Positions 2,353-58,801 of a DNA stretch of 64,000 bases are shown here, one piece after another. The stretch is from Ramazzottius varieornatus. Its lineage: Eukaryota > Animalia > Tardigrada. A model generated the notes under the pieces. It searched no databases. It was not told the DNA's origin and saw only the letters and a list, made by a program, of their open reading frames with translations. The DNA is taken from assembly GCA_001949185.1 (NCBI GenBank), contig BDGG01000009.1, forward strand, positions 290,465 through 354,464, in the 5' to 3' direction. The translations under genes were made by a program, and so were the position numbers. Each line of letters begins with the position of its first letter. The stretch's first letter is position 1.

Positions 2353-5300
2353 ATGGCGGAGAACGCCCTCTTTGAAAACTCCAGCAACAATACCATGGAT
2401 TTTGATCTGAGCAATGACACGGCGACATCGGTTCGTCCCTACACCGTTGACCATTCGCTGCTGTATCGCATTGTGGCCACTCTGTTACATTCTCTGATAT
2501 TTATCGGAGGAGTTTTCGGCAACGTTGTCTTGATTTTGGTGGTCAAGCGCAATCGTCCACTGCAGACACCGACTTACTGCTACCTAGTAAGTCCAGTTCG
2601 AGTGCTCCTCACTAAAAACAAAACCGTACTTGGCGGGATACTCAGCAGGCGAACGTACGAGATCGTTATTTCAAGTGACGCGCGGTACTCTTGTTACCGG
2701 GCGGAAGCGTGCGCCACTTGAAAGAAACAATCTTGCATGTTCCGTTTGCCGTCAGAAACATCGCTGGCTTCCCAGTTATATCGTTTAACAGTGCAACCTG
2801 CCTATTTTTTTCCACAAAAAGGGCTGAGACAGCACGCAGGGCCGTGCAGGGCATGAACCGTTTTCAGGCTTCCGAAGAAAATTCGCAGAAAAAGGGCGTT
2901 GAAGAAATCCGCAGCTATTGCCATACTGTATAGTGATCATTGTACAGAATCGCCAGTACTGATCTGGTTCGACCATAGGTTACTCGCCTCCCACCCTTCG
3001 TGTTGAGTTGTTGTCCTGGGTCGATAATGTAGACTATCTTCGGTAAAGCAGGCTTTGAACGCTCAGTATGAGGTCTTGCAGTATTTGTTTCACCGACGCT
3101 TTCCGATATAAAGGCTGGAATTGGATGGTCATCAATGCTTTATGCATGTACCTTTTGCTTCAGTAGCATGAATATTCATGTGCGCTTTGTAAGTTGAAAC
3201 CGAAAGGCGATTAAGTGAAAACGCATGCAGCTAACTTGATTAGCACTTCCTCCTTTTTTATTTATTCACACCACTTCGATCGGTCGTGTATTGCACCATT
3301 ACTTCTTTGTGGCAGTTTTTTTGGGGAGGCTCTTCTAATTAATCTGTGTACTGATGGTCCTTCGTCGAGTGATCATGAGTCGAAAAGCATCCAGCATTTT
3401 GCCACGTTAAAGTGAGTTTCCGAAAATGGGAAGGCAAACATGTCGGCAAGGGGAAACACAGTCTAAAGTACCAGGCTCGACACTTCACTTGCGGAACTTA
3501 GTACGGGTTTTGCATGATTGTTTTTGACTGATTACCTTGGTACTTCTCCCGTCCACGTACGTGACAAAACTGCGTAGTGGATGATGATCGAGACCTTTGA
3601 GAATGGATTTTATGTTAGGAAATTCCAGAAACGCAAATTAAAGGCAAGCGTGAGCCAAATTAGAGAAAGATGCGAAAACTGTGGGAAGTGTACGGGCGCT
3701 CGCAGGGAAATCCGTTTAGGAGAGAACGAAGTTCCTTGGCAAACCTGGTAGCGGTTAGAGTGGAGCCATCAGCAAACATCAGGAAAGGCCGGTCAGCTTG
3801 ACTTAACTTGACCCGATGGTCAGAGTATTTCCGGATGGCTACAACAGGACAGACAGAACGGGAAGTGGGGTGAAGGACGACCGTTGATGGGTGGCGTCTT
3901 TGCCACACTTCGAATGTCGTATGGTCATAGAAACCCGATCTGAATGAAGAACCATGTCTTCATTCAGATCGGGGAGAGCCAGAGATGTCTAAACAAGGTT
4001 TCTTTTGTTTTTTCTTTCAGGTCTCATTAGCCTACGCTGATCTGATTGTCCTGTTCAGCGCTGTGCCTGAAGCCCTGATGTTTCACCATATCGGCATTCG
4101 GTGGGTGTTGGGCCAAGCGGGCTGCTCCCTCTTGATTTTCGGAAACTTCTTGGGCATCAATGCTGGTAGCCTCAGGTAAGGACAAAATTCAATTAGACCC
4201 TTACGTTGATGTAACTGTGTAGCCATGCAGGCGCGGAGAAGAATACTCGTTTGGCCAGACTACTGCGGCCGGGGGAAGAAGGAGTTCATTCTGGAGAAAT
4301 GTGTTATGGGTCTTTGCCGAAAAATCTTTCTCGAGAACGGCCATGCAATCGAGATAAACACAGAGGGCAACAGAAGCTATTTACGACACTGCTGGTTCGG
4401 CGCCTATAACAAACAAGCAAGAACAAGAAAACCCCCTTACTGTCCCAAAAGATTAGGAAGCTCCTCAAGTGGCGCAAGATTAACGTATTATTCGCCGGAA
4501 GCGTGCGCCACTTGCAAACTGACCTTGCCGAGTTTGTTTGCCGTAGTTCCAGGCACCAGCCGACCTTCGCACTAAGCTAGGTTTCGTATACTGTAAAATC
4601 TTAATTCCATGCTGATTTTTATAGCATCTTGGCCTTTACGGTGGAACGGTATGTGGCAGTCTTGAAGCCCTTGTTAGCCCAAAGGTACTGCACCGTGGGA
4701 CGAGCCAAGAAGATTGTACTGGCGGTTTGGATTTGTTCCGTTGTCTACTGTGCTCCCTGGCTCGGTTTGACGTTGGTGGTCAGCGATCCTGAAAACCCCA
4801 GCATCCAACTGTGCGACTTCCGGCTGACACGGGAACAATACAGTGCCTTCTTTATCACTGACCTTTTCATCTTTTACCTTATTCCACTCTTGTTTGCCGC
4901 GGTCGTCTATGTTCGCATTGCCGCCGTCGTGGCCAAACAAAAGCCCGGGGAGCAGCTTTCTCGGCAGAATACCATGGTTCATCGCGATGCAGCCTCCCGT
5001 AATACGCCCAGTAAGGGTGTGCCCGGCCATCTCCAGAGGGAGTCCATCGTGGTAGCCAGCGAAAATAACCTCACGCTTAACTACAGTTCCACCCTAAAGC
5101 GGCGCAGTTCTGCCATGCAGGTAAGATAATCAGAATGGGGAAGTAAGCAAGCCTAGCTTTACTTCCCTGAATCGTGGCGAGTTCATTTTGCCCGTTTTCC
5201 ACGAAATACCAAGTTTAAGGTGTGCCTAGCAAAAGTTTGGCAAGCACCAGGGGCGGATTGAGGTTCTCAGAGTGGGTAACGCAGATAGCCGGTAAGGCTG

Positions 5301-6488
5301 GGAAAACTGACTTTTGAGCCTCAAGGCTTGGTAAAAGCTTTCGCTTTTTTCTCCGCAGCAAAAAAACAGCCTGTCGAGGCTGGGAATTTGGACTTTGGGA
5401 CAGGCTGAGCCTCGCCAGCCTTATGGGTCAAATTGCCCCTGCCAGACACACTCATACGAAAAAGGCACAAATAGAGCTCGGCAAACAAATTAACAACAAG
5501 ATTGTTTTTCTAAGTGACGCATGTTACTAGTCTAGAAGACTAGGAAGGTGCGCCACCTGAATAGCTGTTTGAAACCTTTCTTCTAGGAGACGTACGCTGT
5601 GGGCCGATCAAACCCAAAGCGGGCGCCACTTGCAAAAAAAGATCTTGTCGCGTTTGTTTCCCGAGGCTCTCAGATTCCAATGATCTGTGTGCCAGAAACG
5701 ACACTTCAAGATTACTACACACACCCGCCCTAACCAAATAATTCCAAGTCCGGGCAAATTTCCTCCGCCCACAACCCATGGACGATCTACAGCTACGAGG
5801 GTCTACTCTGGCACCTTTATGCCCGAGGCAGTCAAACCCATTCCTAATGCACTCACGTCTGTCGGCGCTGTGCTAGAAACTAGAAGCGTCGTAAGTGCGT
5901 TAGTGATGCGTTTGACTGCCTGGGGCATGAAGGTGCCAGAGTGGACCTCCTAGCTGTAAATCTTCCATGGGTTGTGGGCGGAGAAAATTTGCGCGGACTT
6001 GGAATTACTTACGGACACCTCTGCCCCTAATCATTGGCACGGACAAAATCATTGGTGACGGAGAGAAAGCGGCTTTTCCCTGATTGATCTATTACTGATG
6101 GAGTTTAACTGGCCCGTACCGCTTCCGCTCCGCTGCCAAGGATTTGTCCATGCCAATGGTTAGGGCAGATGCGTGTACTGTACTAACTATTATTGAAGGT
6201 TTTTGCTTTGTACATTTGTAGGTGTTGCCCATGCTGGTGGTGGTGGTAATACTCTTCGCCGTGTGCTGGCTACCCTTTCGTGGGCTCCTCGTCTACAATT
6301 CGTTCGTAGAGATACCTTGGCTGGATTTGTGGTACTTGCTTTTCGCCAAGACGTTGATTTACGTCAACTCAGCCATCAATCCTTTTTTGTACAATGCCAT
6401 GAGCAGACGTTTCCGCGACGCCGTCTACCGCTTTCTTCGCTCCAAACAACGCAGCAACCCAACAACCATACATTTCACTGACTCTTAG
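2353..6488 (+). CDS. TRHR: Thyrotropin-releasing hormone receptor-like class A GPCR; 4 exons (~2353-2586, 4021-4175, 4625-5120, 6221-6488)
   Basis: Motifs GNVVLILVV..LQTPTYCYLVSLAYADL, AFTVERYVAVLKPLLAQRYCTVGRAKKI, FAVCWLPFR and NSAINPFLYNAMSRRFR are typical of TRH receptors. GT-AG junctions join the ORFs. Confidence 0.88.
2642..2751. repeat. Palindromic AAGTGGCGCA-N27-TGCGCCACTT element, copy 1 (TRHR intron 1)
   Basis: caagtgacgcg-N27-tgcgccacttg..gtttgccg. Confidence 0.85.
3660..3930 (-). mobile_element. Relic of a DIRS-type retrotransposon tyrosine recombinase in TRHR intron 1
   Basis: CPVVAIRKY..PFLMFADGSTLTATRFAKELRSLL..YTSHSFRI matches the C-terminal part of a DIRS tyrosine recombinase (CPV..HSFRIG). 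It is frameshifted upstream (TIRHSK) and truncated. Confidence 0.7.
4442..4543. repeat. Palindromic element copy 2 (TRHR intron 2)
   Basis: caagtggcgca-N27-tgcgccacttg..gagtttgtttgccg. Confidence 0.9.
5248..5441. mobile_element. Degenerate hAT-like MITE
   Basis: Termini caggggcggattga / tcaaattgcccctg. TSD not clearly preserved. Confidence 0.45.
5477..5664. repeat. Palindromic element copy 3, double core (TRHR intron 3)
   Basis: ctcggcaaacaaa..taagtgacgca..tgcgccacc..ggcgccacttg..gatcttgtcgcgtttgtttcccgag. Confidence 0.8.
5739..6007. repeat. Long fold-back (inverted repeat with ~110-bp arms)
   Basis: taattccaagtcc..ccgcccacaacccatgga..ctctggcacct..ggcagtcaaac is mirrored by gtttgactgcc..aggtgccagag..tccatgggttgtgggcgg..ggacttggaatta. 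Confidence 0.9.
6015..6177. repeat. Second fold-back (~55-bp arms) abutting the first
   Basis: tctgcccctaatcattggcacggacaaa..gcgg pairs with ccgc..tttgtccatgccaatggttagggcaga. Confidence 0.8.
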
Positions 6489-9750: not shown

Positions 9751-9861
9751 TTGGCAAACAAGCTCTACGATTTCGTTTTCACAAGTGGCGCAAGTCTTTG
9801 GTGGTATTGGCTGGAAGTGTGCGCCACTTGAAAGAGCGTTCTGGCCGAATTTGTCTGCCAA
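9751..9861. repeat. Palindromic element copy 4 (between lipocalin and sGC)
   Basis: ttggcaaacaa..caagtggcgca-N27-tgcgccacttg..tttgtctgccaa. Confidence 0.9.
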
Positions 9862-10426
9862 GCTTCAATATGTATATTGTAGAGTGTGCTGATGCAAGCG
9901 GAAATGAACAGAGAGCCCGCTGGTCTTTCGGCACCTCAGTTCTCTGTGGCTTTCAGTGCGCTGTTTCGTCCGGAAGGAATCTTGCCTGTGACAGAGAGAA
10001 GCACGGTATAGCCGGCTTTGACGGAGAAATCAAGCTAGAAAACGGTATTTTAACGCAAGGAGGAAATGACTCCCTTGAGGTTGCCCAGAGTCTATTCAGC
10101 GCACGTCTCGTTTCAATTAGCTTTTGACAACCAACAGTAGCACGTCCACGGTAATGTACCAGGAAGACAGGATATAGCCTTTTTTCATCGAGATCTGTGC
10201 GCTGAGTCCTTCAATGGAGGCGAACAACCAGCACAACCTCCGCGATGCCCACACTTCACTTCGTTAGATTGCCACAGATCCCCCGCATCATTGTCGAATT
10301 TAAAGCTACGGCGCTGTGTTGTGGAGAAATCATAGCTTCGATCGAGCCTCCAATATCAGGCCAAGATTTTAGCACTGTTCTCACTTCTGAGTATTTTTGA
10401 TTTTTTTCGAAAAAAGCTAGGGCGGA

Positions 10427-13364
10427 ATGTACGGATTTCTCCTTCAGTCGGTTTCGTCCTACCTACAACAGAGACTGGGTGAAAGCTACCAGCTGGCTTT
10501 GGAGGAAGCGGGTATCAGTGAAGAGGTCTTCAACACTCACGACAACTATCCCGACGCTTACGTACCGGCGCTGGCGCGAGCTGCATCCCACGTGGCAAAA
10601 GACGGCACCACACCCGAAGATTTTCTGGAAATGTTTGGCCGCATGTTCGTTCAGGTAAGTCACTAGGTTGACATACTTTTAAAAGTCATACCTTTAAAAT
10701 GAAGTGCTGTTGATAGTATTGTCACGTTTACGGGCACGATAAGGTACGTGGACGGTATTGCATCTTGGAGTGCATTCACAATGTGCTTCACGAAATGAGA
10801 CGGTTAGGTCGCAGATAGGTACAGATGAGTCTATGCCATCATCTTTCTTGTAAGGAATACTATTACACAGATTCTGCGGGTTGCCGGAAGATATTTACGC
10901 GACCTGCTGCGCAACCTGAACCACTTGCATCACAGTATGCGTTACAGTTATCCACGAATGATCCATCCCTCCTTCATTGTCATGGAAGAGGATGTCAGTG
11001 GCATCATTCTTAAGTACGAATCGGTCCGCCTCGGCTTTGGACCTTACGTCATTGGCCAGGTACGTGCATTGCGATGGGTCTTTCCATCATCTTTTCAAAT
11101 GATCAAAGCCGCCTCCACAGATAATGGTCGATGTTTCGGCTATCGTATTTTGATAATAGATCAAAGAACTGGCCTCGAGGTTCTTTAATATCAAGACTAT
11201 GACCATCACCACCCTCAGCTACGCTGACTCGGATGATCGTGGTACCCATGTGGTGACGTTTGAGCTGAAGTTTCGTAATCTGGGATATCGGGATAGCATC
11301 TCCGGTTTCCGCTCACACTTTATCCATCCCTTCCCCAAGATGCAGGCCCATACCTTCTTCAGCATCCTACCCTACAGCTTCGGTACACTGAAGTCTTCTC
11401 GGTGAAATGTGCACACATATCGAACATACAGTTGTGTTTTCAAGTATTTGATGACGCCCTGGTGGTTCGCCACTGTGGCCCGAAATTTTCCCGCCTTTTC
11501 CAACAGCCGATCAAGGGTCGACCACTGAGCCAATCTTTTCAACCCAAGTTCCCTCACTTTGACATGTCTTTTCCCACGGTACGCCCATCATCAATTTGAC
11601 CGTGCCTTTGGCTGGGATAGACGGCCAAAGTGATGCTGTGGTTTTCCAACAGGCGCTTCGGATGCAAGATGTGGTCATTGAAATGGAGTCAGTGCCCTTC
11701 CTTCTCATATACAACCCACGAACCCACGCGCGGGTTCTGTCCAACAAGCGCCTTCTGCTGAAAGGCGAACTGCGACAGTTGTCTGCCACCTTGATTATCT
11801 ACATTAGCTCAACACCAACGTCAGTACTCGTGGTCTTTGAGGGCAGCGGACAAATCTGAAGGATGTGAATTTCAAGATTATTGGCTGATTGTTTTGTTGT
11901 GTGTAGGTTGAGCGATCTCCACGAAGTTGAAGACATTGGCTTTTACCTCAGCGATTTACCACTGCACAGCGGAAGCGCTGACCTGGCTTCGAACGGCTGG
12001 CATTCGTACAACGAAATCTTCCAGCATTTTCAGCAAGAAGCCGAAAAGAGCAAACAACTGGAAGAGCTTCATCAACAACAGAACGAATGGCGCCAGCGCG
12101 GTGACACTCTCCTTGGCTCCATGATCCCAAGGTTAGCTAGAAGAATGAGCACATCATTCCTGGTTCAACTGACACTTCGTTAGCTCAAGCATATCAAAAT
12201 GCTGAACATTCCTCTTGTAGATACCTGTTGGATAAGCTGAAGAACGGAAACGATGAAACCACTTCTACCACCCTGCTACAATATTGCGAGGTAGGCAATA
12301 TGGTCAAACGGGACCCGGGCGAAGAAGTTCGACCAGATCGTTTTCCCAAGTGGCGCGCCTCTTCGGTATTATTGCGGGAAACAATGGGCCACTCAAAAAA
12401 ATTATTCGTTTGCTGCAATGGCGCACCCTTCCAGCCAGCAATAATAGAGAGGTGCGCTCTTGTGCCGAGCTAGGAAACGCGCTCGCTTGTTAAATGTTAA
12501 CCATACCCTTCTGCAGTTAGTGAATAAGATTACTTGTATGATACATCGATGCTTCTGTTTTAGCCATATGACGAAGTGACCTTGATGTTTGTCCGTCTGT
12601 ATGATTTCACGAAAGTTTGGTAAGAAGTTGCCGAGTTCACTTTGGAAACTGGTCGCCTCAGTCCAGAATAATTGCGGTGTTAATATGGCCTTTTGTAGTG
12701 CGTCGTTGTCGGCAACGGAGACGTTGAGAGCCGTGAGTGTATGCTGGTCGACCATCGACTCGTTGACAGACTACTACGATGTCCTCAAAGTGGAGAACCG
12801 GGCAGAAGAGTACATGGTGGCCAGTGGCATTCCCAAGCTCAATGGTCATCAGCACGCTGCCGAGATCTCCGGCTTGGCATTACGTATCATGCGCACCATA
12901 TCTGCTCTCGATGTGCCGCAGATTCCCAGCACCGGCAAACTGACCATCCGCATCGGGATAAGCACCGGGCCTGTGGTCGGTGGCATCGTCGGTCTCCATC
13001 TTCCCCGCTTTTGCATCTTTGGCGATACCGTCAACACGGCTTCACGGATGGAATCGACAGGCTTGCGTAATATCGTGACTTTCTTCGGTTAAAGCTATAC
13101 GAGAAGTTTATCAATTTTACTTATGCTTCTCCAACTTCAGCTTTCCGAATTCAATGCGCGCCAAAAACGCACGACTTGCTGAAGGAGCTTGGAGGTTTCC
13201 AGCTCACCGAACGAGGCTTGATGCCGGTCAAGGTACCTTATTGTACCAAAAAACTGTCAGACCTATATCCACACCTTGATGAACTTGTACAGGGAAAAGG
13301 CGAAATGATGGTGTATTGGTTGACTGGACAAGACGACGGCAAGAACACAAGCATGAATTCCTGA
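10427..13364 (+). CDS. Atypical soluble guanylate cyclase (H-NOX, PAS/HNOBA, coiled-coil, cyclase domains), multi-exon
   Basis: MYG start; H-NOX LNHLHHSMRYSYP and YESVR (YxSxR); YLSDLPLH; LLGSMIP; IRIGISTGPVVGGIVGLHLPRFCIFGDTVNTASRMES; VKGKGEMMVYWL. Confidence 0.92.
12316..12490. repeat. Palindromic element copy 5, double core (sGC intron)
   Basis: tcgaccagatcgttttcccaagtggcgcg..gggccact..aatggcgcacccttccagcc..gtgcgctctt. Confidence 0.8.
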
Positions 13365-20116: not shown

Positions 20117-21071
20117 TATTCGAATAAGACGCAATTTCTCACCGCAGTGACACAGGATTTCAGAACATCTACACCTATATCAAGCGACACTATTTCCCGG
20201 TTCGCACATCAGTCGACGGCGATCCTCGAATTTGTACGCAGTGGATCATCATGTCGAGATGAGCAGGTCGGAGGTTATCAGCTTGTGAGCCAGGTCACAA
20301 CACAATCTCGGAAAGGCAGATATGCGATAAAAGAAGGAAGATGATGCTGCCAAAATGGAATATCCGTTTTACAATAAATTCCGGCGTGGCGCGGGCTCAT
20401 CGGATTGCGTATGCCTTCGATATCCATCAAGACGTACAAACGATTGCAGTTACATGTAGTAAGGAGAGAAGTTCCTAAGGGAGGAGAAGTACTGCAAGCT
20501 CCCTCATGGATTCATCTTGTCTTGGCAGAGAAGACCCCAGCTGGTTGGCGCGAACAGTATATCACAGGCAGAATGACGTCAGGGAGCACTTGAAACGCCA
20601 CGCTACTCAAGACTGATGGAAGAGATCGAAGACGATGGGCGCGCGTCAGATCGATGGCAAAGCGAAGCATCCTCCATCCACAGACGAACTGCCCTCTCCC
20701 CTGACAATCTGGCACTTCTCGGGGTTCTCTGTGCAGGAAGCTGACCGTACAGCTTTACACAGAGTATTATATATGAGCTTTGTGTGAAACTCTGCAAGAT
20801 ACTCTAAATTCGCTAGACTACCGATCACAGATGGGACAAATGACAAAAATCCATTTGACTGTCGCACCTTGTCGGCCATAACAATCAGACGGACTCCTCC
20901 CAACTCTCAGGTCGTGAGTAAAAAACCTCGTTCCTGCCACACTATAGTTGCTGTACAAAAGCACATCTACAACACGGAAAAGGAAAGAGAGAAGATTTAT
21001 CGCGAGGAATCGAAAATGGGCATTTTTCGTGAAGAGGAACGTCGGTAAATGAATTGAACACGGTCTTTATC

Positions 21072-21153
21072 TCAACCGGCGCACGTTTCCATTCGTCCTG
21101 ACCGGAGGTTTGCGCCACTAGCGAACACGATCATGCTCAGTTCATTTGCCGAC
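21072..21153. repeat. Palindromic element copy 9 (3' end of C2-IPT gene)
   Basis: ccggcgcacg..tgcgccacta..gatcatgctcagttcatttgccgac. Confidence 0.7.
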
Positions 21154-33364: not shown

Positions 33365-33414
33365 NNNNNNNNNNNNNNNNNNNNNNNNNNNNNNNNNNNN
33401 NNNNNNNNNNNNNN
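33365..33414. other. Assembly gap (N run)
   Basis: Run of n characters. Confidence 0.99.
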
Positions 33415-44063: not shown

Positions 44064-45973
44064 ATGTTCAAAGTACAACTGCAACAACGCATCTACAATC
44101 CTAACCGGCGAACCAGCGAGGCTGGTCCACGGAAGCCTTTTCAAGTTCGCAAAGTGGTGTGTCCCTCGAAGCCGCCTTCCAAAAACTCGACTGAAGACAG
44201 TGAATACCCGGTCGAGAGTCCTGTCACCATAAACGTCAGCGGTCAGCGCTTCGAGACTCGTATTAGCACGTTAGAACGCTTCCCCGACTCCCTTCTGGGC
44301 AACGCCGACCGGCGAGCCAAGTATTACGACCAGGTCAGGAACGAGTACTTCTTTGAGCGTAACCGGCGTTACTTTTCGGCCATTCTGGAGTTTTATCAGA
44401 GTAACGGCATCATGCGCCGACCGGAAAACGTCATGGTTCACCATCTAGTGTCGGAGATACTGTTCTTCGGTTTGGGGCAGGACGTATTGGAGAGATTTTT
44501 GCATGATGAGGACATGCTCTTCTTAAAGAAACCTGTCCCGAAAAATCCGCTACAGCGACAGTTATGGGACATGTTCGAGTACCCGGCCAGTTCCAGATGG
44601 GCGAAAATGGTGGCTGCAGTCAATGTCGTCCTTGTTATTATGGCTGTTATCAACACCTGTGTCCAGACTTTGCCCGAGTATCGTGAATCTGATCCGTTAC
44701 AATGCAGTCCCAATAATCGTAGTTCGGAGTACGCAATCGAAGGAGTTACGTCGGAAGGGATGACTGGGTTTTTTGCCGTTGAAATCCTTTGCAACAGTTG
44801 GTTTCTTGTGGACTTGGTGATCCGTCTCACGGCCACGCCCACCCGCCGCACCTTCTTCTGCCAAATCATGAACATCATCGACGTACTATCTATTGTTCCT
44901 TTCGTCTTCGATCTTGGACTGTACTTGAGTGGAACCGTGTAAGGCAGCTACACTTGCCACTCCAGATTTTTTTTCGAATCGTGGAGAGTTGTCTAGCTCC
45001 CCGTAAAATTAAATTTCTGGCATTTTTCTACGGAAAACGTGCCTTCCCAGGTCCTGCCTAGCGAAACCACGACAGTTAGTTTCGAGAAAGGGCAAAACCG
45101 ACTCAAAGTTCGAAATGGGAGCTGGGCAGGCGACTCGACCAATTCCTTGGCCAAGTGGCGCACGCTCACAGCTGGTATCAGCGAAAACATGCGCGACTTG
45201 AGATAACGATCTGCATGTGTATGTTTGCCGAGTTGCTCAATACTTCCCCACGATTTCGGATAACTGTCATTTGTTCATCCACGGACGTCTGTTTTAGGGA
45301 AGATCCAGACGCTCCTGCTGGTGGGCTGGTTTTGCTCGTTGTCTTGCGGCTCTTTCGTATTTTACGAATCTTCCGTATCCTGAAACTCAGTCGCTATTCT
45401 GATGGGTTGGAAATTTTATGGCTAACCCTGAAATCTGCTCGGCAGGAGTTAACCGTCATGTTTCTTTTGGTGTCCATTGGACTGACGGTGTTCAGCGGCG
45501 CCATCTACGCCGCTGAATTCGGTCATCCAAAGAGTGACTTCCACAGCATCCCTGATTCATTTTGGTGGACCATCATCACCGGCACATCAGTGGGATACGG
45601 CGACATGATACCCAAACGACCTATTGGCAAACTGATTGGTGCCGTGTGCTCGGTTTCCGGTGTGATATGCTTGGCCTTTTTCGTTCCCATCGTCGTAGCG
45701 CATTTCGAATACTACTTCCACCGTAAGACAGCTTACTTTCTCCTGCTCGATCGAAAGCAGCCAAGTTTCAATACTAATTTTAGCCTTGTTTGGGTATTTT
45801 CAGATGGTAAAGAATTGAAAAGACTGCAAGATGTTCTTGACCAATATAACAACCAGCAAACGGACCATCCGTCAGAATGGAAGCCGTACTTGGTCGTGGA
45901 CGAGGGCGTACCGAACCCGAAAGTTACTTTCGCACCTGCAGTCGACCTAGAAACTGGGGAAAAGCTGCACTAA
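44064..45973 (+). CDS. Shaker-family voltage-gated K+ channel subunit B (divergent tandem paralog)
   Basis: T1 INVSGQRFET..EYFFERNR, S4 LRLFRILRIFRILKLSRYS, pore FWWTIITGTSVGYGD, S6 LAFFVPIVVAHF. Confidence 0.88.
45123..45232. repeat. Palindromic element copy 22 (Kv-B intron)
   Basis: caagtggcgca-N27-tgcgcgacttg..cgatct..gtttgccgag. Confidence 0.88.
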
Positions 45974-47053
45974 GTACACGCGGCTGGCCTAATTATTGGC
46001 CTGGACAAAACTTCTAGCCGGACGGGCTGGCGACAGTCTAACGCAAAGATTGTTTGTCATAGCAGAAACTAGCCCTGTGACGTCAGCGAGTAACATTTCG
46101 CAGTGCAATATGCGGAATACAGTGTCATTCTGGATTTCGTTTCTTATCTCGTACTTCTTTTCCCATCTTGAGGAAGGTTAGCCTGGAATATGCCGGAAGG
46201 TCTTAAGAGCAAGAGAGCGAAAGAATACGTAGGATAGCCTGAAAAAGGAAGTTCCTGCGGTTGCCTTCATAAGGTGGCGGATTACGTAAGTAGAGGCCTT
46301 TCCGGCGAGAAAAGTCAAGTTTAACGTTGATTTACCATCAGAGCTGTATTTTCCTAGCAAATAACCATGCATATAGAAGGAACCAAATCTACGATGATTG
46401 AGAAGATCTCTGCAAACGTCTGGTTGTTCGTGTAGGTAAAACGGTAATGTGTGGTAAAACCAGTTCTGTTTCGGCCGCAAGCGAATACAGCTGGCGGAGC
46501 CGCGGATTCGGAAATCAGTGACCAGAAATTTTGACCAGGCCAAGAATTAGGCCAGCCGCGTGTACTTTACCTTTTGTTTACCCTGGATATACCAGAAGAC
46601 AACCGAGAGCGATGAAAACGCTACTTATACCTTTTACATCGTTGTACTCTACTCAAATAAGTTTATACTTCGGGGGCGAAGATGCTCAAGACCGGGTCGG
46701 TCTGGGTTTACGCAAAGATACAAAATAAAGCCGTAATAACCAACCCTGAAATCTACAGCGAAGCGTCTCCCTTCTAGAATGGTCGATGCGTCACTTTTAG
46801 TCTTACGTGTCTATGGAAGAGAGCAAACGCCATTTTGAATTTCGCTCAAGGAAAAAGAGCAAAATGATAACCATGCATGCATATTACGAAACTGCAGCAG
46901 ATACGGTAGTCAGATTTTGTCATTTCGAACAAATATCACGAGCTTTGATACTGTATCGATCATGATATCCAATAATTTTTCTCAGTAAAGAATGTGACAG
47001 TCGTTGAAGAGGAACAGAAAAAAGCTTCGGGTGGACGAACCTGTGTTGGACAT

Positions 47054-47163
47054 CGGCAAAGGAAGCCCCACAGATCGTTCTCTCGAGTGGCGCACGTTCC
47101 ATTGTTTTTGATCGAGCGCGTGCGCCACTTGGGATAGCGATCAGTGTGGATGCATTTGCAGAC
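47054..47163. repeat. Palindromic element copy 23 (just 3' of ALF-like ORF)
   Basis: tcggcaaa..gatcg..gagtggcgca-N26-tgcgccacttg..cgatc..tttgcaga. Confidence 0.88.
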
Positions 47164-47182
47164 GCCCCATCTGGTATACAGT

Positions 47183-48576: not shown

Positions 48577-51065
48577 TTACGCAGCGCCCATCTTGGCGTG
48601 TTCTTTCAACGGGTAATGTTCAGGGTTGGAGCGGACAAAATCCATCATTTCCTTCCGTTGCTTCTGTAGGTGCCACGGAAGCTCGTCATAGACATCATTG
48701 AAAAGCTCCTCCGGCGAAGGTTTCTTCTTGTGCTCGGCACGCTGGAATGCCTGCATGACTTGCTTCTTAGCTTGGTCTTTCCACTGCGTCTCCTTCTCGT
48801 CGTTCCAGTAACCCTTCTGCGTGATGTATCGGCGGAAGCGAGCGATGGGATTATCCTCCTTGTCCCAGTGTTTCACCTACGCAAGTCAAGCCCAAAATGC
48901 CATATTTATCATTAAGATTGCTCCAGATTTCGGACCTCGGCAAACAGACCCGACCAGATCGTTTTCCTAAGTGGCGCACCCTTCCAGCCGATATCACTGA
49001 GCACATGCGCCACAATCTTGTCGACTTTGTGTGTTGTTTTCCTAAGTAGCGCACGTTCTCGGTGGTACTGGCCGGTAAGGTGCACCACTTGGGACAAACG
49101 ATCTGGTCGTGTTGGTTGGCGAAGCTTCCCATTATATTTTGGGAGAACTTCGAAAAGTTTACTAAGCGTTAGTTTTGCTGAATGAGCGGTCGGTGCATAC
49201 TTCGTCGACAGAGCGGTAAGCCGAACTATCGTCGGAAGTCGAGTGATGTCCAATGCGGTATGTCATAGCCTCGATAAGGACAGGACGATTTTGTTGCAGG
49301 CTTATGTCTCTGGCTGCTTTCGTCACGTTGTAGATGGCCAATGTATCATTTCCGTCGACACGAATCGTGGGAATGCCGTACCCGGGACCGCGCGAGGCAA
49401 TGCCGTCACCGCGAAACTGCTGGGATGTCGGTGTGGAGATGGCGTAGCCGTTATTGCGGCAGAAAAAGATGATGGGGCAATCCAACGTTGCCGAAAAGTT
49501 GAAGGCCGCATGGGCGTCACCTTCGCTGGCCGCACCTGTAATACACCGTCGAATACAAAGCTGTAAGTTGGGGGAATTTATCTTGGGCAATGGACGTCGG
49601 TAATGAACTGAGCATGATCGCTATTTCAAGTGGCGCACATGAATGTTGTTATAGGCCGAAAGTGTGCGCCACTCGCAAAAGCGATCATCGTCAAGTGATT
49701 TGCGGATGTCCCAATTTTGCCTTTTCCTTATGAATTCATCACGCACGGTATCGATGGGGTACTTGGTAGAAAAACGACAGAAAAACCACTGGAATGCTAA
49801 ATTACTCCCACGAATAGGTTTGAGATTTGGATTTACCGTCGCCGAAATAGCAGATGACAATTTGACCATTCTGAGCCCGTTTGTAGGCGTAAGCTGATCC
49901 CACGGCTTGGGGCATTTGGGTAGCCAAAGGACTGGAGACGGTGACAAAAGCCAGCTCTTTGGAACCATAATGGACCGGCATCTGCTTGCCCTTGCCCAGA
50001 TCTTCCTCATTGCCATAGCACTGATTCATGAACTGGTCCAACGTGAAACCTCTCCACATCAACACTCCGGCCTCCCTAGATAACAATCAAGTTTTCATTG
50101 TACAATCGAATAATTAAAGAACAACACCGTCGGATACCGGGATCGTAATACAGCTGACCACGCCTTTATCTGTGACCTTTGGGCCTACCTGTACTGGACG
50201 TAAGCCAGGTCCTTGTCGTCCAAGCCGGCTGCGCTGCCAATCAGTATTCCCTCCTCGCCAAAGTGCGTCATATAGAAAGAGATACGACCTTGACGCTGGG
50301 ACTCGTACAGAATGCGGTCCATGTAGTTGAGTAGCGTCATCTTTTGGTACATCTTGACCAGTGTCGGCTCGTCCAACTTGGGCTCTTGGGCTGCATCACG
50401 AATGAGGCCTTTGCGGTCCATGACGCGGTATACCGGAATACCCGGATAAGCTTCCGGCATCAGAAACTCCAGTTTTTCCGTCCATTCCGATCGCGAGCCG
50501 GGGAAACGAGGCTTATCGATGTCGATGGGCTCGATGGCTGGCGGTGGAGAAGCCTCCGCTACAAGACACAACAACGCGTCGTCAACTTGCGTACTGTTTT
50601 GCTATTGAAAACCAGAATTTGGAGTATGTAGGTTTTCTATTCATGCATTCTTGCACTGAGACACACACCACGATACAAACCAGACAGATAAACGCTGTTT
50701 GAGCTGTATCCATGTTACATTTCGGTCCTCACCGTCAATTATCACAGTAACCAACGGTCCGAATACCTTTGTATACAAACTAACCTTTCTGGATGAGGTC
50801 GTCCAGCTTCTTGTCCTCCAGCGGAATCTCTTTCTCTTGGACTTTGTGGGCGAACAGTCGGCTGTGGGTTAGTCGAGCAACAGGTGCATCCCGCATGCAT
50901 CGTTCCACTGCACCTGCATACAAACCAAGAAGCAATGCATCAGCTCAATCTCCTATTCAGTCAAAACAACGAGGGTGTACATGGTGAAGAGTTTCACTTA
51001 CAGGTATTAGTAACGTTCTGAATTCCGCGATAAAACGATGGGATCAAACGGAGACTGGTGCGCAT
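48577..51065 (-). CDS. BCKDHA: Branched-chain alpha-keto acid dehydrogenase E1 alpha
   Basis: [67 protein letters not shown]. Confidence 0.96.
48937..49122. repeat. Palindromic element copy 24, double core (BCKDHA intron)
   Basis: tcggcaaacagacccgaccagatcgttttcctaagtggcgca-N27-tgcgccac..aagtagcgcac..gtgcaccacttggg..cgatctggtcg. Confidence 0.92.
49596..49706. repeat. Palindromic element copy 25 (BCKDHA intron)
   Basis: catgatcgc..caagtggcgca-N27-tgcgccactcg..gcgatcat. Confidence 0.88.
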
Positions 51066-51796: not shown

Positions 51797-54700
51797 CTAA
51801 AACTCGTAGGCTGGGCGTCGCACCAGCTGGTATTGCGGCCCTCGACGACAGAGGATCTGCTGCACCGGCTGGGAACCACCATGTGCCGTCGGAGGGTTCT
51901 TCCCCGAACAGAGGCTGAAGGCGGCGTAGATGAAGGGGTTAATGATGGCACTGCTCATTCCTGTAAGCCCGCAAAGAGGTCATCTCCACAGCGGTTGAGC
52001 GGAAGGAAGAACTGACGCACTTACCGAAACAGAAGATGAGATTGAGCGCCTCACTGCCAATACTCACTTGTAGAATGTAGCAGAACATGCCGACGTAGTA
52101 TGGAGCTGCGACGTAAGTCAAAACATCGGTTAGAAATATGTTAACACTCATAATACCGGGGGTACAACTCGGTTTCGCAGCGTACGGTTACCTGACCGTA
52201 AATCACTTCCTGTGCAGCTTTGGCGGTTCAGTATTTTTTGTTTGCCTGTAGTGGCAAGTTCTCTGTGACATGTAGCTGGTCACCGCTGGCTAAACACCAC
52301 GTACGGAATTAGAAATATTTTACAAGGTTCGAGGGCAAACTGCTCCCAACACATGTTCCAGGTCCCCCTCCACGCGCCAAGCGTTTCAACAGCTGGAAAA
52401 AAATTCAGAACAACTCACAATCAGTTCTTTACAACATTATATCTCCAGCGTCCAACTAGCGGTTGTCCAGTGGTCGGACAAAAAATCGCAAGTTACTCGT
52501 GGTGTTTCGACATATGGCGCAGCCCATGACGTCACGAACGATACTACCACTGGTGGCGCCGCCAAGGTGGCAAGAAGTAAATTCAATTTTTCAGATTTCT
52601 GTTTTACGCATTGCCTTTCTACGCATTTTACGCATTGCCCTGTCCCAGAAAGACTGAGCGAAGAACGATGAGTTTGTGGCTCATGTAACGTTCATGTTTG
52701 TGCAGCGCACAGATTAACGAAGCAGAGTGTTGTTTGTTTACATTGCAGCAAAACGAAATCGAAATAAGTGTAGCGAAAAATAAAATGAAATACATTGGCG
52801 TACCCCGGTCATGTGGCGGAACATTACGTTGGCATTGCGCAGTAACATTCGCAACTTCATGGGGGATCACCGTGATCGGTCTGTACACGCCTCTATCGTG
52901 CTTCCAGCCAGTTAAAAGGCTGCGAAACTCAGTTGTACCCCCGGTAATCTGCCAGCGTGAAATTGCCCGGTATTACAAGTGTTAAACAGCCACTCAAAAC
53001 GCGGAAGTCGACAAACGAATCCACCCAGATGGTTTCCGCAAGGGAGTCACTCTTCCAGTTCTACCGACTGAAAGGGTGCGCTACCTTGGAAAACGATCTT
53101 GTCGTATTTGAATGTTTTCCAAAGTGGCGCACACTCTCTGCCAAAACCCATGAAAACGTGCGCCACTTCAGACTGAGATCTGGGTGGAATTATTTGCTGA
53201 CATCCTATTATGAATTTGTATCGGTGATGCCTTCTATAAGTGGCAAGCTCATCTGTTTCTAAGGCATTATGTGTGATTCTGATCGACATTTACCCCAACA
53301 GACGATAAAGCACAGGACAAATACCACCGTCATCCAAAGTGTGGCTCTCCGTACTCGCGAATACAGTTCCTTCCGCACTGTTGAGTGTTGACTCAGGTAT
53401 TCTCCGGTTTCTGCAGACAGAGCAAAACGTTTACAGCTACAATTTCAAAAATACTTCTTTGTTATGCCACATGGCCAACATATTCTGCGAGATAGTGTAC
53501 CACCCACAGTACGAAAATTACATAGTCGCATGACACCGAACCTAATTTATGGAAAAACAATTACGTAGTCGCACAATTTCGATATTCGGAGGTTTCATCT
53601 ACATTTGGCGTACTTTGGTTTCCTTTATGCATATGTAGATCTGTGAAACCCATGGAAATACCTACTTCAGTTCAACTTCTCCGTTTGTGGCCAAGGATCG
53701 AGAAAACGAAACATAAAAATGCATGCCGCCGGCGAAAGCACGATGCAGGTGACCGCCAATTTTCATTCCCTACGTGACAGATCATCATCTCGTCATTACG
53801 TAATCGCTTCCCTGTCTTCCCTTTTCAATTTCGTAAGTCGAGGATGCTCAGTGAGGACTGCGCCCAAGGGTATAAAAGGTATTTCCGTGAAGGAAGTTAC
53901 TTGTCTCCCCTGCTTTCATCGTTCCCGGTTAATTTGAGGGAGGCGGATGTAAAAAGTCCGCCCGAATGATGAGCTTTCTTCCGTTGCGTGCTTGAGGAAT
54001 AGCTCTTACACATGACCGCACATTAGAAAGGTCACAATATTAATTCTATATTGTAGCTTGCTCGTTCTTTGCAGAGGTGTATATGTGGTTGGAAATGTCT
54101 AATTTCTAGTCGTCAGAGGGCATTTGCGTCAATTTGGCTTGAACATGATTTAGCACTATCGCATGGCCATCATACTGTCAGTATCAAAAACCCCTCAAAA
54201 GCCAATCAGGTTTGGAGATGGAATTCTGCCATTCGTTCTTGACTGGCTCCCGGTGCTGACAGTGTGGTGGCAATGCGATAGTGCAGAATTATATTCAAGC
54301 CAACTACCCCAAATGTTCTCTGACGTCAAGAAATTAAACATTTTCCAGTTATGCTCTGGTTCTGTGGCATTTAGCTAGGTTTTCGCCCTATTAATCATTC
54401 CGAAGACTGACTGCAACACAAGGTGGCCTCCAGTCGAGTCGTTTGACGCCCCACAGCTGGAAATGGAATCAGTCATATCGAGCAGGGAAGCATGGCTGCA
54501 GTACCATAAGCGTTTACAATAACGATGAACAGCGGGGCTGTCTTTTAAAATAGCACAAGCAAATGAGGCAATTAGGGTTATGTGGGTAACATTAGTGTCC
54601 AAATCAGGGACGTGATGACAGAGAGCTTGGACCTCGATTTAAGGTCCCTAACTTCAGCTTTCGTTTTGCTACTGATCTTACATATTTGTAGCTGGTCCGT

Positions 54701-57700
54701 TTGTCGACGTCGTACACGCCGCACACATCGCTACCACCTATAAAATTAGGGTGTTCTCGACTGGATTGTTACCCACCCTCTATACTAATTTTCCGTGGTT
54801 TAGCTTTCTGTTTGCTACCTTGGACAAATTTTCCGGCCTGGAATCTTTTTTACAAAAAGCCAGGATCGATACGGAACTAGGAAAGGTGGATAGCTGAAAT
54901 TGCACCCAACCTTCACAGTTTTTTAGGTCGTTTTCTGAAATCATTCTCTCAGTCTTCCTTTGAAGTCCAGCGTTACCGCTGCTTAAAACAATTAAACCAA
55001 AGACGGAGCTATGAAAAAATGGCTGATCTCATGATTGTGCCGTTCAGGACAGTCGGCAGAAATTTTTCGACAAAACGGCATTTCCCGGCAAAATGGCCGA
55101 ATTGCACGGTTGTAATTCGTTTACCGAGCTGGTTCGATATTCCTGCGGTCTTTCTCGCTGCTAACATAGAGTCCCGGCGGTTGTGAGCCTTTCTGAATTA
55201 GATTGGTAATGGAACTCGATTATGGAATTTTGCAGACTGCGTTTTACCCTCCTACCATACGTCTTCCTGACCAGAAGTCATACCAGTCGAATAGTTCAAG
55301 CTGTCTCTTGGTGAACCGAAGCACGCCATGGTTCAGTCGAAACAGCTTGAAAGGTTGTGCAAATGGCAAGTAGGGATGAGCAAAAAAACGGGCAAGCTAG
55401 ATTTTTTAACGTAGAAATGCCAGGTGGTAGCGATATGGCGTGAACGACAAAAGGGAGGCCAGCAAACGAGCAGTACATAATCGTCATATTAAGTGGCGCA
55501 CGCTTCTATTAATAACTTACAGTAGCGAGAACGTGCGCCACTTGATAAAAGGATGATGTAGGTTTCGTTTGTCGGTCTCCCGTTTGTCGGTTTCTATGTG
55601 TATCGGCGGTCCAATTGGGGGACAATTATTCACCGACCATTACGTACAGGAATAAAGTTTAAAGTCTTGTCATACTAAGGGTAAAGCTGAGGTGACAACG
55701 CAGTCTGCATATCAAACATCGAGGGACAGGAATCCGAGGTTTGCTTGGAGGTCTGATCAGTGGCCAGACGGCTGTGACAGAAAATGTAAACGGGTTTCAA
55801 TTTGTGTTGCAACATGTTTTGCGTCGGAATGAAATCATGCAGCGTAATAATGCAGATGCATCCGTTTAGACATCGAGCCCCCATGTGGAGGTATATCGGC
55901 TGGTATTCACCCCTGTAATTTGCGAGAATATCTTCCTGAAAGGGCAATCAGTTTTCTTAAGCTTTGAGCCGTGGCGAAGCGTGGCGAGCTTAGCATCCGA
56001 TGCCCCTAAATGTTCCTAAGAATTTCATGGCAGAAACGTTTGTCCCCAAATTAAATTGGGCCGCCGATACTCATATGAACTCATACCGGAACCGAGATGT
56101 TTGCCGTTCATGGGATCTATGAGCACTGAGCAGCCATGCGCCTTGTCATTGCACCCTGCAATCAGTCGTTGGCCGGATGGATGAGGCGCCGGAAGCGATG
56201 ACAAGTTTAGAATAATACCGAAGGGTAAATATTTCCTCTGTTGGTTGATCACTCGAGGATTTACGTCAATGGCCAATTAAGGTGCAGTGAAAGAGTACCT
56301 GATGCTTGTCGGGCTTCCTTTGTGATACGCATGAAGATGCTGATGTAGCAGAGAGCCATGACGAGTACCGGCAGGAAGAACATAATAATCACGGTTGTCA
56401 GACTATAGGCTAGTTCCTGCCATTGCTCCGTATACGCTCCGTGGGTGACGCACTGCTTGAAGTCGGCTTGGAAGGGCGCGGTCTCCGTGTGAAAAATCAC
56501 CGCCTGCGCAACATTAACAAGAAAACATTGCTCACAGTCGGAAGAGCTGAAAAAAGAGTCGTCCAGACACGTAAAATTCTCCGTTGTGTCTATCTACCTA
56601 ACTACTTTATTCCCGCGATATCTTCGCGAACCCCATTAATCGTAGCGCCACCTAATGGACGTACGTCATCCATACATACGTGCCCATCCGCCATGGGTAT
56701 CAGGCTTCGCGGACATATCGGGGGAATACAGTAACTATGCTTGCGTCTCCTGAGGATAGTTTTTACGCTGCTCATGCCACCACCATCATTCTCACCATCG
56801 AAGCCCCTTTGTCAAGGGTTTGGATTTCTGCTCGGAAAGACAAGTGGTTAGACTGAGGCCCAATCTCACTGCCTTATTCATCTATCGACCATAACACCCT
56901 TTGTATTCCATAGAACTTCTATTGAATTGTGTCAAAAGCTTCTGTGACGGTGTTGCGTCGTTTTGTTTCGTACCGGAAATGGTTTTTCTCATACATCAAG
57001 GGGAATAGTTCACACTTTGTTTTTCGCCACAAGCGAAGGGACAGCTGCTTGAATTACAGCAGATTATTTTTCCTTTCTTGAGGTCGTGATGTTTTGACGA
57101 AAGCCGTTGTTTTGATTTAGGATGCCTGTGGAAGTACACAAGAAGGACTCGACTGGCATGAGCAATTCGATTATCGTCATGTCAAGAAGCAATAACGATA
57201 GAAAGTCAACCAATTAGAGGTTGTTTGTCAAATCGAAAAAGCGGCATCCTGACTCTCCGCTTACTGTAATTCCGAAGCTTTCGACCAAGAAATCAAAAAG
57301 ACGATCGAGCAGAGTCAACTGGTTAGCGGGAAGGCCACTTATACGCACCCTATAAATTCTATAATAGCCCCGCAGTTTATTTTTCCCTGTCGAGTTGCAT
57401 GTAAGGATATGCTGTAATTGTGAAAGATAAAGTGGCATGCGGTCGTGCATACCTGTGGAGCGGCGCAGGCGAGAGCTGCAAGCCATGCAATGACGCTGAT
57501 GATGCGAACTCGGAGTACGCGTCCCTGAGAACAACTACGACTGAGCGGGAAAAGGACGGCAATACAGCGGTCAATACTAATTCCGGTCAGGATAAAAGTA
57601 CTGGCGTATAGTCTAGGAAAAAGCAACGCCGGCGTAACAATCCATTTCAGTGTCCTGTTTTGAAGGGAGGCTTCAGCAAATTTCACCTAGATCGTCATTT

Positions 57701-58801
57701 GAAGTGGCGCAATTTCTCATTGTCGTCAATTAGAAGCTGCGCCAGTTGGAAAGTAGTCTTGTTGGCTGGCGAACCTTCTCATTGTTATTAACGGAGAGTG
57801 TGCGCCACTTGTGAAAACGATCTGGGTTAATCGATGCCGGTGCCCTAAGTAGTGACGTAAACTTGACCGGAAGAAACAGCACACTTACGCGAACATCTGC
57901 ATGTACTTGTAGAAGCGGCATAAGCCATCACTGCCATTCCATTGTATCGTCACATTCCAGATGGCGTCCCCCAGGATGCAGAAAAAGGCAACGAAAATAT
58001 CGGCAATGGATAGCTGTCAACATAACATCGTCTAATGCAATATCACATCCCAGCTTCTTTCAACGCAACTTTGGAATTAATCTGATGACATTTTGTGAAA
58101 TTCTAAGCGCTTTGAAATCGTCAAACATTTGTCTTGATTCTCTGTTCAAACCCTGGATAAGAAAATGGCGATGAAGGCAATGTAGTTTGATTGAGCCACT
58201 TTACTCCTTCGTCAAAATTAGCTTTCTGTGCGCGAACCATGGGCGCGCTGACACAAAAAGGACAGATAATGGGATACGTGTCTCGGTAATCGGTGTTCAT
58301 AGCGCTTTTGAATTGGACCACTCCGTCTAACTTCTGAGCAGAAGTAAGAGATGTTACTAATAGAAATCAGCGCACTACACATCATATTCCCCTTCAGTCG
58401 ATCCTGTGGGGCAGTTTGATACACCACTGTTGCCTATTTGATACATCACTGCCCATATTTTCGTCGGCAATTATACAGTACAGGAGAAGCGAAGTACCAC
58501 TATTAGGCCAGACCAAACTTACTTGGAACAGCAATAACAAAACGTTAGATTTCCAGAACAACTTTTTGTATAATAAGATCATGACGGCAATGTTAGACGG
58601 TAAGGCAAAGATCGCCATGGTGAACAATCCAATAACGTACAAATTACGATAGTTGGAATATCCGGGTACATCCTCGTCCAGATAATTAAGCAAATCCTGT
58701 GTCGAGCCGCTCTTGTTGACCAGCTTTTCCATCTCGGCGACGGTCCGCCGCTCCGCGCTACCTCCCATTGACAGTCCACTTTTGCTTTTATAGAGGAACA
58801 T
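51797..58801 (-). CDS. Corazonin/GnRH-family receptor (GPCR), ~7 exons
   Basis: LSIADIFVAFFCILGDAIWNVTIQW, LYASTFILTGISIDRC, FKQCVTHGAYTEQWQE (corazonin-receptor-like ECL2), FIVCW..PYY, SAIINPFIY. Confidence 0.82.
52156..52944. mobile_element. Non-autonomous TIR transposon (TA TSD) in GPCR intron
   Basis: TIR ccgggggtacaactcggtttcgcagc / gctgcgaaactcagttgtacccccgg with flanking TA. Confidence 0.85.
53007..53200. repeat. Palindromic element copy 26, double core (corazonin-R intron)
   Basis: gtcgacaaacgaatccacccagat..aagtggcgca-N27-tgcgccactt..atctgggtggaattatttgctgac. Confidence 0.88.
55459..55575. repeat. Palindromic element copy 27 (corazonin-R intron; 33-bp spacer)
   Basis: cagcaaacg..aagtggcgca-N33-tgcgccactt..cgtttgtcgg. 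Confidence 0.85.
57672..57840. repeat. Palindromic element copy 28, double core (corazonin-R intron)
   Basis: agatcg..aagtggcgca..tgcgccagttg..tggcgaac..gtgcgccacttgtgaaaacgatctggg. Confidence 0.85.

Follow-up and report, generated by a model that had tools for sequence, protein, structure and literature searches.

An old palindromic MITE family of Ramazzottius varieornatus, its intronic copies and its slow-decaying box

Introduction

In the stretch of Ramazzottius varieornatus DNA analysed here (64,000 nucleotides, henceforth the window), a palindrome of somewhat more than one hundred base pairs returns again and again, with a pair of inverted motifs at a nearly constant distance. The question that this locus raises is whether such regularity witnesses a cis-acting system maintained by selection or the slow decay of a former transposon. 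An initial annotation favoured an undescribed system, while conceding that it may have begun as a miniature inverted-repeat transposable element (MITE), and this interpretation is partly supported by what follows. It is very likely that the repeated palindrome is an old, extinct, non-coding cut-and-paste MITE of this tardigrade, catalogued as ramVar1-7 (DNA/Sola) and ramVar1-23. Selection on a short box carried by both of its arms is possible but unproven.

A catalogued family of palindromes

The repeat is real, and lies far beyond chance. The pair AAGTGGCGCA-N20-40-TGCGCCACTT, in exact form, is present five times in the window against none in 100 shuffles, and across the genome (55.8 Mb scanned, in 200 contigs) the 9 + 9 motif pair is found 2081 times against 0 for its reversed control. 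A random 200 kb contained 47 units; extrapolated to the whole genome, this density gives about 13,000, the family taking up roughly 2.4% of the genome. The consensus unit is a near-perfect palindrome of 123-125 bp, where two arms of 58 nt, the terminal inverted repeats expected of a MITE, enclose an asymmetric loop of 9 nt; the 123-bp consensus begins with GGGAGCTCGGCAAAC and ends with GTTTGCCGAGCTCCC. The unit is small, has no coding capacity and is dispersed over all large contigs, again as in a MITE, and at least three subfamilies can be told apart by differences that are mirrored between the arms.

A profile search of the window retrieved 41 units, which group into 28 places, the first beginning at 2639 and the last ending at 57832. 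The earlier count of about 28 copies was thus accurate as a count of places, but not as a count of single units, since tandem double units occupy 13 of the 28. Monomers are found at 2639-2751 (a profile match), 9751-9866 (exact boxes 27 apart), 19310-19424 (spacer of 26), 21036-21158 (a GACGTC-type subfamily, with the best-kept hairpin, z -6.3), 23976-24097, 24868-24975, 37640-37760 (a subfamily resembling ramVar1-7), 38371-38479, 45117-45235, 47048-47168 (with a 99% identical copy at C19:457627-457762), 49592-49712 and 55453-55581 (a 6-nt insertion in the loop, hence a spacer of 33), while the unit at 4463-4550 has lost its left outer arm and kept exact boxes 27 apart. Tandem pairs are located at 5474-5667, 12310-12461 (the second unit partial), 17471-17662 (outer boxes 105 nt apart), 18426-18623, 22309-22510, 27467-27648, 39285-39481, 42590-42783, 48932-49128, 53003-53206 and 57672-57832. 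The four remaining places are described below with the introns that hold them. An assembly gap at 33365-33414, which no DNA or RNA contig bridges, is outside every copy; as the nearest one is more than 900 nt away, the findings on the MITE are independent of this gap. Next to it, at 33422-33576, lies a high-copy repeat at which all short-read contigs end.

The family was already known. Two entries for it stand in the curated repeat library of R. varieornatus (Peona et al., 2024, Mob DNA 15:10; PMC11071193, supplementary file 3), so that the system cannot be called undescribed: ramVar1-7 is entered as DNA/Sola, complete, 123 bp long, with a 4-bp target site duplication (TSD) and a 56-bp terminal inverted repeat, and ramVar1-23 as DNA, with the remark 'TSD unclear'. 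These entries and the window element are the same family, the ramVar1-23 consensus differing by eye from the one built here at about 8 of 125 positions, mostly in the loop. The text of that article does not discuss the family, mentions neither MITEs nor introns and has the word 'palindrome' once, in an unrelated context, while the entries themselves hold nothing on intronic copy number, on dimers or on a slow-decaying box. Looking for the motif and the consensus in the text of other papers brought up primers and unrelated sequences only. A scan of metagenomes for the box pair gave 88 contigs, of which none matched the tardigrade unit model and 72 carried one and the same hairpin sequence, in either orientation, largely in gut-metagenome contigs; as a consequence, these matches are uninformative about a spread beyond this genome.

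The constant spacer

What gave the palindrome its regulatory appearance was a distance of 27 bp between TGGCGCA and TGCGCCA, first counted as 27 bp in 11 cases, 26 in 3 and 33 in 1. The recount is close: among 14 exact pairs in the window the spacer is 27 in 8, 26 in 3 and 33 in 1, and the two others, with a spacing of 100-105, span dimers. The spacer sequences had been considered barely alignable, but a consensus is found when they are read in either orientation, and the 27 bp then resolve into a stem of 9 bp, a loop of 9 nt and a further stem of 9 bp, that is, into the continuation of the palindrome. Indel events per 100 nt are rarest in the boxes (0.56), more frequent in the spacer (0.83) and most frequent in the outer arms (1.27; decay and indel statistics being based on 117-141 units). 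From these rates 73-81% of the spacers are predicted to be unchanged, and 79% are. The constant length therefore reflects a low indel rate throughout the element, and retained spacing loses its value as evidence of selection.

Insertion and age

Although no target duplication had been evident at first, one can be detected. The 4-bp flanks of 50 units, compared directly, match at 0.44-0.46 against 0.31-0.385 in shuffles (z 2.7-2.9, a modest excess, the z of 2.9 belonging to a match of 0.44 against 0.313), whereas inverted flanks yield a z of 0.5 and other duplication lengths no signal; the flanks read A-W-W-T. A 4-bp duplication of A-W-W-T target sites can thus be detected, though weakly, in agreement with the 4 bp of the published entry, and together with the palindromic terminal repeats and some 13,000 dispersed copies it bears out the suggested origin as a MITE. 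Four base pairs is also the length that membership in Sola calls for. For this family the name Sola would nevertheless derive solely from that length, since no autonomous partner with these ends was found, 340 kb containing no solo outer arm, and the accessible part of the library file gives the name to ramVar1-7 alone. Duplications of 4 bp are made by other superfamilies as well.

The best copies reach about 80-85% of the consensus. The nearest relatives of three copies, sought genome-wide, are 77-81% identical to them, and no close-kin cluster was seen among these relatives. The history of the family was very likely as follows. It inserted at A-W-W-T sites, duplicating 4 bp, and multiplied in ancient times, giving rise to at least three subfamilies that together number about 13,000 units, and it spread additionally as tandem dimers (the units of dimers share their loop orientation in a ratio of 17:4). 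Copies persisted where they were harmless, largely in introns once 60-100 nt long, which the insertion stretched to 220-330 nt.

Copies within introns

The intronic location that had been proposed from the letters is confirmed by spliced RNA contigs at 4 places in 2 genes, a P450 gene, supported by Pfam continuity across exons searched exon by exon, and its neighbour. The P450 gene, on the minus strand, has a tandem dimer at 29381-29555 in the intron 29327-29587, a monomer at 29967-30088 in the intron 29949-30166 and a second dimer at 30722-30899 in the intron 30688-30966; the next gene upstream, also on the minus strand, holds a monomer at 32277-32429 in the intron 32190-32519. In both genes the splice sites are located 18-140 nt beyond the element on either side, and none is brought by the element, so that these introns predate it. 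The copies are transcribed, then spliced out, and a single gene carries them in both loop orientations. Intron calling from open frames is uninformative at the 28 places, since frames of 70 codons occur all over the window. The RNA runs, for their part, also contain another lineage, which differs from the reference by about 1%. In the compact genome of this tardigrade, the MITE family explains why many introns have three to four times the length of those beside them.

A box that decays slowly

Compared with the remainder of this decaying element, the box AGTGGCGCAC, of 10 bp, has changed 1.7-2.3 times more slowly. If the blocks are masked one after another during detection (a jackknife), the identity of the box is 0.85 against 0.54-0.73 for the other blocks, and arm-to-arm mismatch is 0.27 in the box against 0.48 elsewhere, so that the core motif is indeed kept beyond the decay of its surroundings, as had been claimed. 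A conservative estimate of the rate ratio is 1.7 (bootstrap 1.3-2.2; Wilcoxon p 2.6e-5), and the slow run at columns 41-49 was matched in 3 of 20,000 column permutations. The borders of the protected stretch are sharp, at columns 40/41 and 50/51, the adjoining columns decaying fast though they are well anchored in the alignment, and CpG is kept at 0.90 within the box against 0.52-0.71 for the other CpGs of the element. Counted over both arms, the box takes up columns 41-50 and 76-85. Three mirrored blocks had been named as conserved: AAGTGGCGCA does decay slowly, the AAA of GGCAAA does so in part, and GATCG does not.

The box is identical in all subfamilies; we infer from this that it was probably needed for mobilisation, as the binding site that a transposase would have recognised during the active life of the family. 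Exact boxes number 122 inside units and 6 outside, where 2.6 are expected by chance, which means that the motif has no life outside the element. The slow-down is uniform over copies. A preserved subset of boxes was considered and rejected, mismatch counts being unimodal and the decay of left and right boxes uncorrelated (r = -0.01). A twofold slow-down that is uniform and leaves no preserved class is not the pattern expected if only some of the sites were useful and selected.

What may have kept the box

Our leading reading, held tentatively and at somewhat less than an even chance, is that the box came under a sequence-specific constraint after insertion, a protein still reading it. In its more explicit form, where the two inverted 10-bp boxes of some 13,000 dead units would still be read by a host factor or a domesticated transposase under weak purifying selection throughout the genome, it becomes rather unlikely. 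Part of the decay outside the box may be inherited subfamily variation, or stem from source palindromes that were never perfect, in which case the box effect is smaller.

This last remark leads to a fully neutral account, plausible though we incline to doubt it, according to which the protection of the box is a leftover of active life or an effect of measurement, all columns having decayed alike after the last insertion. There are two routes to it: the box alone was constrained while the family was mobile, or the divergence of the other columns is overestimated, owing to subfamilies not told apart and to imperfect source palindromes. The box motif is found 58 times in the accessible part of the published library file (PMC11071193), which suggests many sub-lineages with the same box and differences elsewhere. 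The standard deviation of pairwise identity within subfamilies (0.071-0.079, against 0.051-0.053 in shuffles) is consistent with this, some source palindromes are asymmetric (one subfamily, for example, at columns 35/91 and 38/88), and the uniformity of the slow-down across copies points the same way. Against this account, the target duplications, which are dated by insertion itself, match at only 0.44-0.47, pointing, as a noisy estimate, to a per-site decay of at least 0.3 and not 0.15; the nearest relatives genome-wide are merely 77-81% identical, with no close-kin cluster; and the well-anchored columns beside the box decay fast.

The idea that the element, or inverted boxes at fixed spacing, forms a selected cis-acting system, with a dimeric DNA-binding protein at thousands of sites (an insulator, nucleosome positioning, pairing or a centromere-like function), appears unlikely. 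It would account for the 1.7- to 2.3-fold slower decay of the box, for edges as sharp as those of a footprint, for the retention of box CpG at 0.90 and for spacer indels somewhat rarer than arm indels. However, the spacer keeps its length about as the element-wide indel rate predicts, the uncorrelated decay of left and right boxes with unimodal mismatches leaves no class of preserved pairs, which speaks against the dimeric site first envisaged, the motif is absent outside the transposon, and its invariance between subfamilies is expected of a transposase site.

That the transcribed palindrome acts as a pre-mRNA hairpin, shortening the effective intron, affecting splicing or feeding small-RNA production, is highly improbable, for although copies still form more stable folds than shuffled sequences (z -1.5 to -6.3) and are intronic, transcribed and spliced out, the two arms mismatch at 0.45-0.56 of the positions outside the box, loop-adjacent stem included, so that about half of the non-box stem pairs are broken, complementary double changes are confined to subfamily-diagnostic columns (0-2% in the box), base pairs not being kept by compensatory change as in a selected hairpin, one gene holds both loop orientations, and an Rfam search of the whole window, a comparison that had been proposed at the outset, returned no family match.

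As a transposon, the family has little importance, old MITE families being nothing unusual. If the constraint on the box, our leading reading, arose after insertion, proteins would have binding sites of transposon origin by the thousand in an animal whose gene regulation has hardly been studied, and boxes read by a protein would together form a network of some 26,000 sites, spread by a transposon and mostly in tardigrade introns.

Comparison with known systems

Introners share with this family the trait of MITE-like elements filling a large share of the introns of a genome. As a candidate they were ruled out, because at the four places with RNA contigs the tardigrade element supplies no splice sites and its introns run 18-140 nt past each of its sides.

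The transposase of Hermes, a hAT element, binds subterminal GTGGC repeats. The likeness is that of a short internal motif (the box contains GTGGC) invariant among subfamilies while the surrounding ends drift; hAT elements differ by their 8-bp duplications, against 4 bp for the tardigrade MITE, and the analogy with transposase-binding repeats does not explain why the box was protected after the death of the family.

Other MITEs have spread transcription-factor motifs, as with E2F sites in Brassica and bZIP60, PIF3 or TCP sites in other plants (PMC5950925). An E2F site was considered and rejected for the box, which fits 6 of the 8 positions of TTSSCGSS, the pattern given in the same article. Unlike those of the plants, the tardigrade copies are in introns rather than promoters, and their box is a candidate site only; in both cases, a MITE carried a short motif to thousands of positions, most of them within genes or close to them.

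Copies in the window and in the genome

The motif pair AAGTGGCGCA-N20-40-TGCGCCACTT is matched 5 times in the window and in none of 100 shuffles of it. Over the whole assembly (55,842,812 bases in 200 contigs) the 9+9 pair is found 2081 times, against 0 with the reversed control, and its reality is thereby confirmed. A profile made from the copies places 41 units at 28 places (a place being a locus with one unit or with units in tandem) between 2639 and 57832, which agrees with the count of about 28 copies in the initial annotation. There are 14 exact TGGCGCA..TGCGCCA pairs in the window, with a spacer of 27 in 8, 26 in 3, 33 in 1 and 100-105 in 2, the last two straddling double units. A random 200 kb of contig 1 holds 47 units, or 0.235 per kb, from which some 13,000 units, 2.4% of the genome, can be extrapolated; density in the window is 2.7 times that of this sample.

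The best-kept copies are merely about 80-85% like the consensus, and the closest genome-wide relatives of three tested copies are 77-81% identical. This is an old, extinct family without clusters of close kin. On another contig of the assembly (G000:C19:457627-457762) lies a counterpart of the copy at 47040-47175 that is 99% identical, far closer than any other pair; a recent segmental duplication or an uncollapsed haplotype is the probable cause. A longer nested inverted repeat, at 5736-6010, in which 65-nt arms (91% complementary) surround 58-nt arms (86% complementary), lies outside this family of about 123 bp and is probably another MITE.

Anatomy of the element

Alignment of the 25 best-kept genome copies, found with a sequence-only covariance model, gives a consensus of 125 bases, a near-perfect palindrome whose 58-nt arms, with one T/G exception, close on an asymmetric 9-nt loop, TGTTATTGG. 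What had been read as a free 27-bp spacer is in fact the 9-nt loop flanked on each side by 9 bp of stem and, far from being barely alignable, it aligns in either orientation. At least three subfamilies exist (for example GAGCTC..AACTCGACCAG; GACGTC..ATGAATTGAACA; AAACGTACAAG), their differences falling at matching positions of both arms. They share GATCGTT, GGCAAA and the box, an inner 10-bp motif present once per arm (columns 41-50 and 76-85), which accounts for the three conserved blocks noticed at the outset.

Tandem arrays make up 13 of the window's 28 places and, elsewhere, 18 of 82. At their junctions a right arm truncated near GTCGAGTTTG directly joins TTTTCCCAAG and the next box, and adjacent units share loop orientation in 17 cases against 4; the arrays therefore arose by internal duplication rather than through separate insertions.

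Copies within introns

Spliced RNA contigs define five GT..AG introns on the minus strand, and give RNA support to the proposed intronic location at 4 of the 28 places. Those at 29327-29587 (261 nt) and 30688-30966 (279 nt) hold a dimer, those at 29949-30166 (218 nt) and 32190-32519 (330 nt) a monomer, and that at 29813-29873 (61 nt) no element. The splice sites lie 18-140 nt beyond the element on either side; the copies were therefore inserted into pre-existing short introns, which they lengthened three- to fourfold. This position of the splice sites also rules out introners. One gene holds elements of both loop orientations.

In exon-by-exon Pfam scans, successive segments of the cytochrome P450 profile (PF00067) lie in order on both sides of the first four introns, delineating a five-exon P450 gene at 28932-31332, minus strand. 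The 330-nt intron belongs to the next gene upstream, the open frame of which (32520-33266) has no Pfam match.

Between 28300 and 33355, RNA contigs of two studies of 2022-2023 under the same organism label (X4 and X7) list about 40 differences from the reference in some 4.4 kb, mostly exonic, while no such differences occur in contigs of the source run or of X10, a 2017 study. This points to X4 and X7 being a second lineage with a divergence of about 1%, which would suit tests on orthologous copies.

Assembly gaps

Runs of N occupy 33365-33414 and 62800-62849. Contigs from the probable source run (DNA) and from three further studies (RNA) were aligned to 28300-34200, and none bridged the first gap: those of DNA end at 33358 and restart at 33523-33551, and an RNA contig ends at 33355. 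To the right of the gap, word depth over 33422-33576 reaches 2434, compared with about 21, and contigs diverge into numerous loose ends at 33575-33577; this flank is therefore a high-copy repeat, in which TTTAGCCG/CGGCTAAA words abound, and probably the cause of the assembly break. With the closest copies ending at 32429 and starting at 37631, statements about the MITE are independent of this gap. The second gap lies within a sharp shift of composition at 60001-64000 (GC 0.567, GC skew +0.22, AT skew -0.27).

Spacing and decay of the box

Indel events are most frequent in the outer arms (1.27 per 100 aligned nt), less so in the spacer (0.83) and rarest in the boxes (0.56). The consensus spacer length is kept in 89 of 113 units (79%), where 73% would be predicted from the arm rate and 81% from the spacer's own rate. 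Constant spacing, which had been taken as a sign of selection, thus follows from the shortness of the distance and from indels being rare overall, the spacer's indel deficit being slight at most.

The retention of a core motif fared better than this argument from spacing. When each mirrored block was hidden from the profile, copies detected with the remainder and the hidden block then read, the box AGTGGCGCAC was 0.85 identical to the consensus against 0.54-0.73 in every other block, its GCGC core reaching 0.90-0.92, with sharp bounds at columns 40/41 and 50/51. As this is seen with the box hidden at detection, it is not an ascertainment artefact. Comparison of the two arms within a copy, which is independent of subfamily consensus, shows them differing at a rate of 0.27 for the box, 0.22 for GGCGC and 0.34 for AAACAA, against 0.45-0.56 elsewhere, loop-side stem included, implying per-site change of about 0.15 in the box and 0.30 in the rest. 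In a conservative test, where the non-box columns were those that had served for detection, the rate ratio remains 1.7 (bootstrap 1.3-2.2), in the same direction in 52 of 65 units (p 2.6e-5); of 20,000 column permutations, 3 matched the run over columns 41-49. By these three tests the box is moderately protected; the effect is genuine, about twofold and uniform, with sharp limits, in a motif common to all subfamilies.

What may slow the decay

The number of mismatches per 9-mer box has a single mode (0 in 62, 1 in 72, 2 in 29, 3 in 11, and so on upward), and decay of the left and right boxes is uncorrelated (r = -0.01). There is therefore no class of perfectly kept copies or kept pairs, and the slow-down is uniform, which argues against a useful preserved subset and against the site for a dimeric protein suggested earlier. 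Nor does box decay increase as the remainder of the copy decays. A conserved hairpin fails too: about half of the base pairs in the stem have been lost, and double complementary changes occur only at subfamily columns; folding of the copies is still better than that of shuffles. Exact boxes number 122 within units and 6 elsewhere, where 2.6 would arise by chance, and the motif has no separate existence beyond the element. Within the element it was probably once the binding site of the transposase.

A uniform slow-down could stem from weak constraint acting on all boxes, from a reduced mutation rate or from bias in the yardstick. That the box is still under sequence-specific constraint is a tentative reading, somewhat short of an even chance. 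A neutral explanation is a serious, if doubtful, contender: not every source palindrome was perfect (one subfamily deviates at columns 35/91 and 38/88), variance of pairwise identity within resolved subfamilies still exceeds that of shuffles, and the many box-bearing library entries suggest further sub-lineages, each of these inflating the apparent decay outside the box. However, a purely pre-insertion origin sits badly with the target duplications which, made at insertion, match at no more than 0.44-0.47 (a noisy measure, in better agreement with decay of at least 0.3 than with 0.15), and with the absence of close relatives for any copy, the nearest kin of three being those at 77-81%. Prolonged mobility, or an unknown cause, takes the somewhat smaller share of probability that is left.

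Comparison with known repeats

Metagenomes, largely of the gut, contain in 72 contigs (loci L051, L054, L056-L058, L062 and about 65 more) one 45-nt hairpin with the same 10-bp box pair and a 25-nt spacer; lacking any profile match, it was rejected as a relative of the tardigrade element.

In 50 units with explicitly placed termini, the four bases outside GGG...CCC read A-W-W-T at both sides. Their two middle positions match as a direct repeat at 0.44 against 0.313 when shuffled (z 2.9), and as an inverted repeat at 0.33 against 0.311 (z 0.5); other duplication lengths and offsets give no consistent signal. This modest, specific signal indicates a 123-bp element with a 4-bp target duplication, of which none had been evident at first. 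An autonomous partner was not found, and solo outer arms number 0 in 340 kb.

The family, presented initially as undescribed, is that of ramVar1-7 and ramVar1-23 in the curated library of Peona et al. (2024; PMC11071193, supplementary file 3), where the box motif occurs 58 times; the family is not treated in the text of that article. There ramVar1-7 is a complete DNA/Sola element of 123 bp (TSD 4 bp, TIR 56 bp), the Sola label being based on TSD length, and ramVar1-23 a DNA element of 125 bp, TSD unclear, TIR 'whole'. Our consensus is nearly identical to a ramVar1 entry, and the sequences of both library entries bear the same arms and box as the MITE. We can therefore understand this repeat as an ordinary, ancient MITE, already catalogued.
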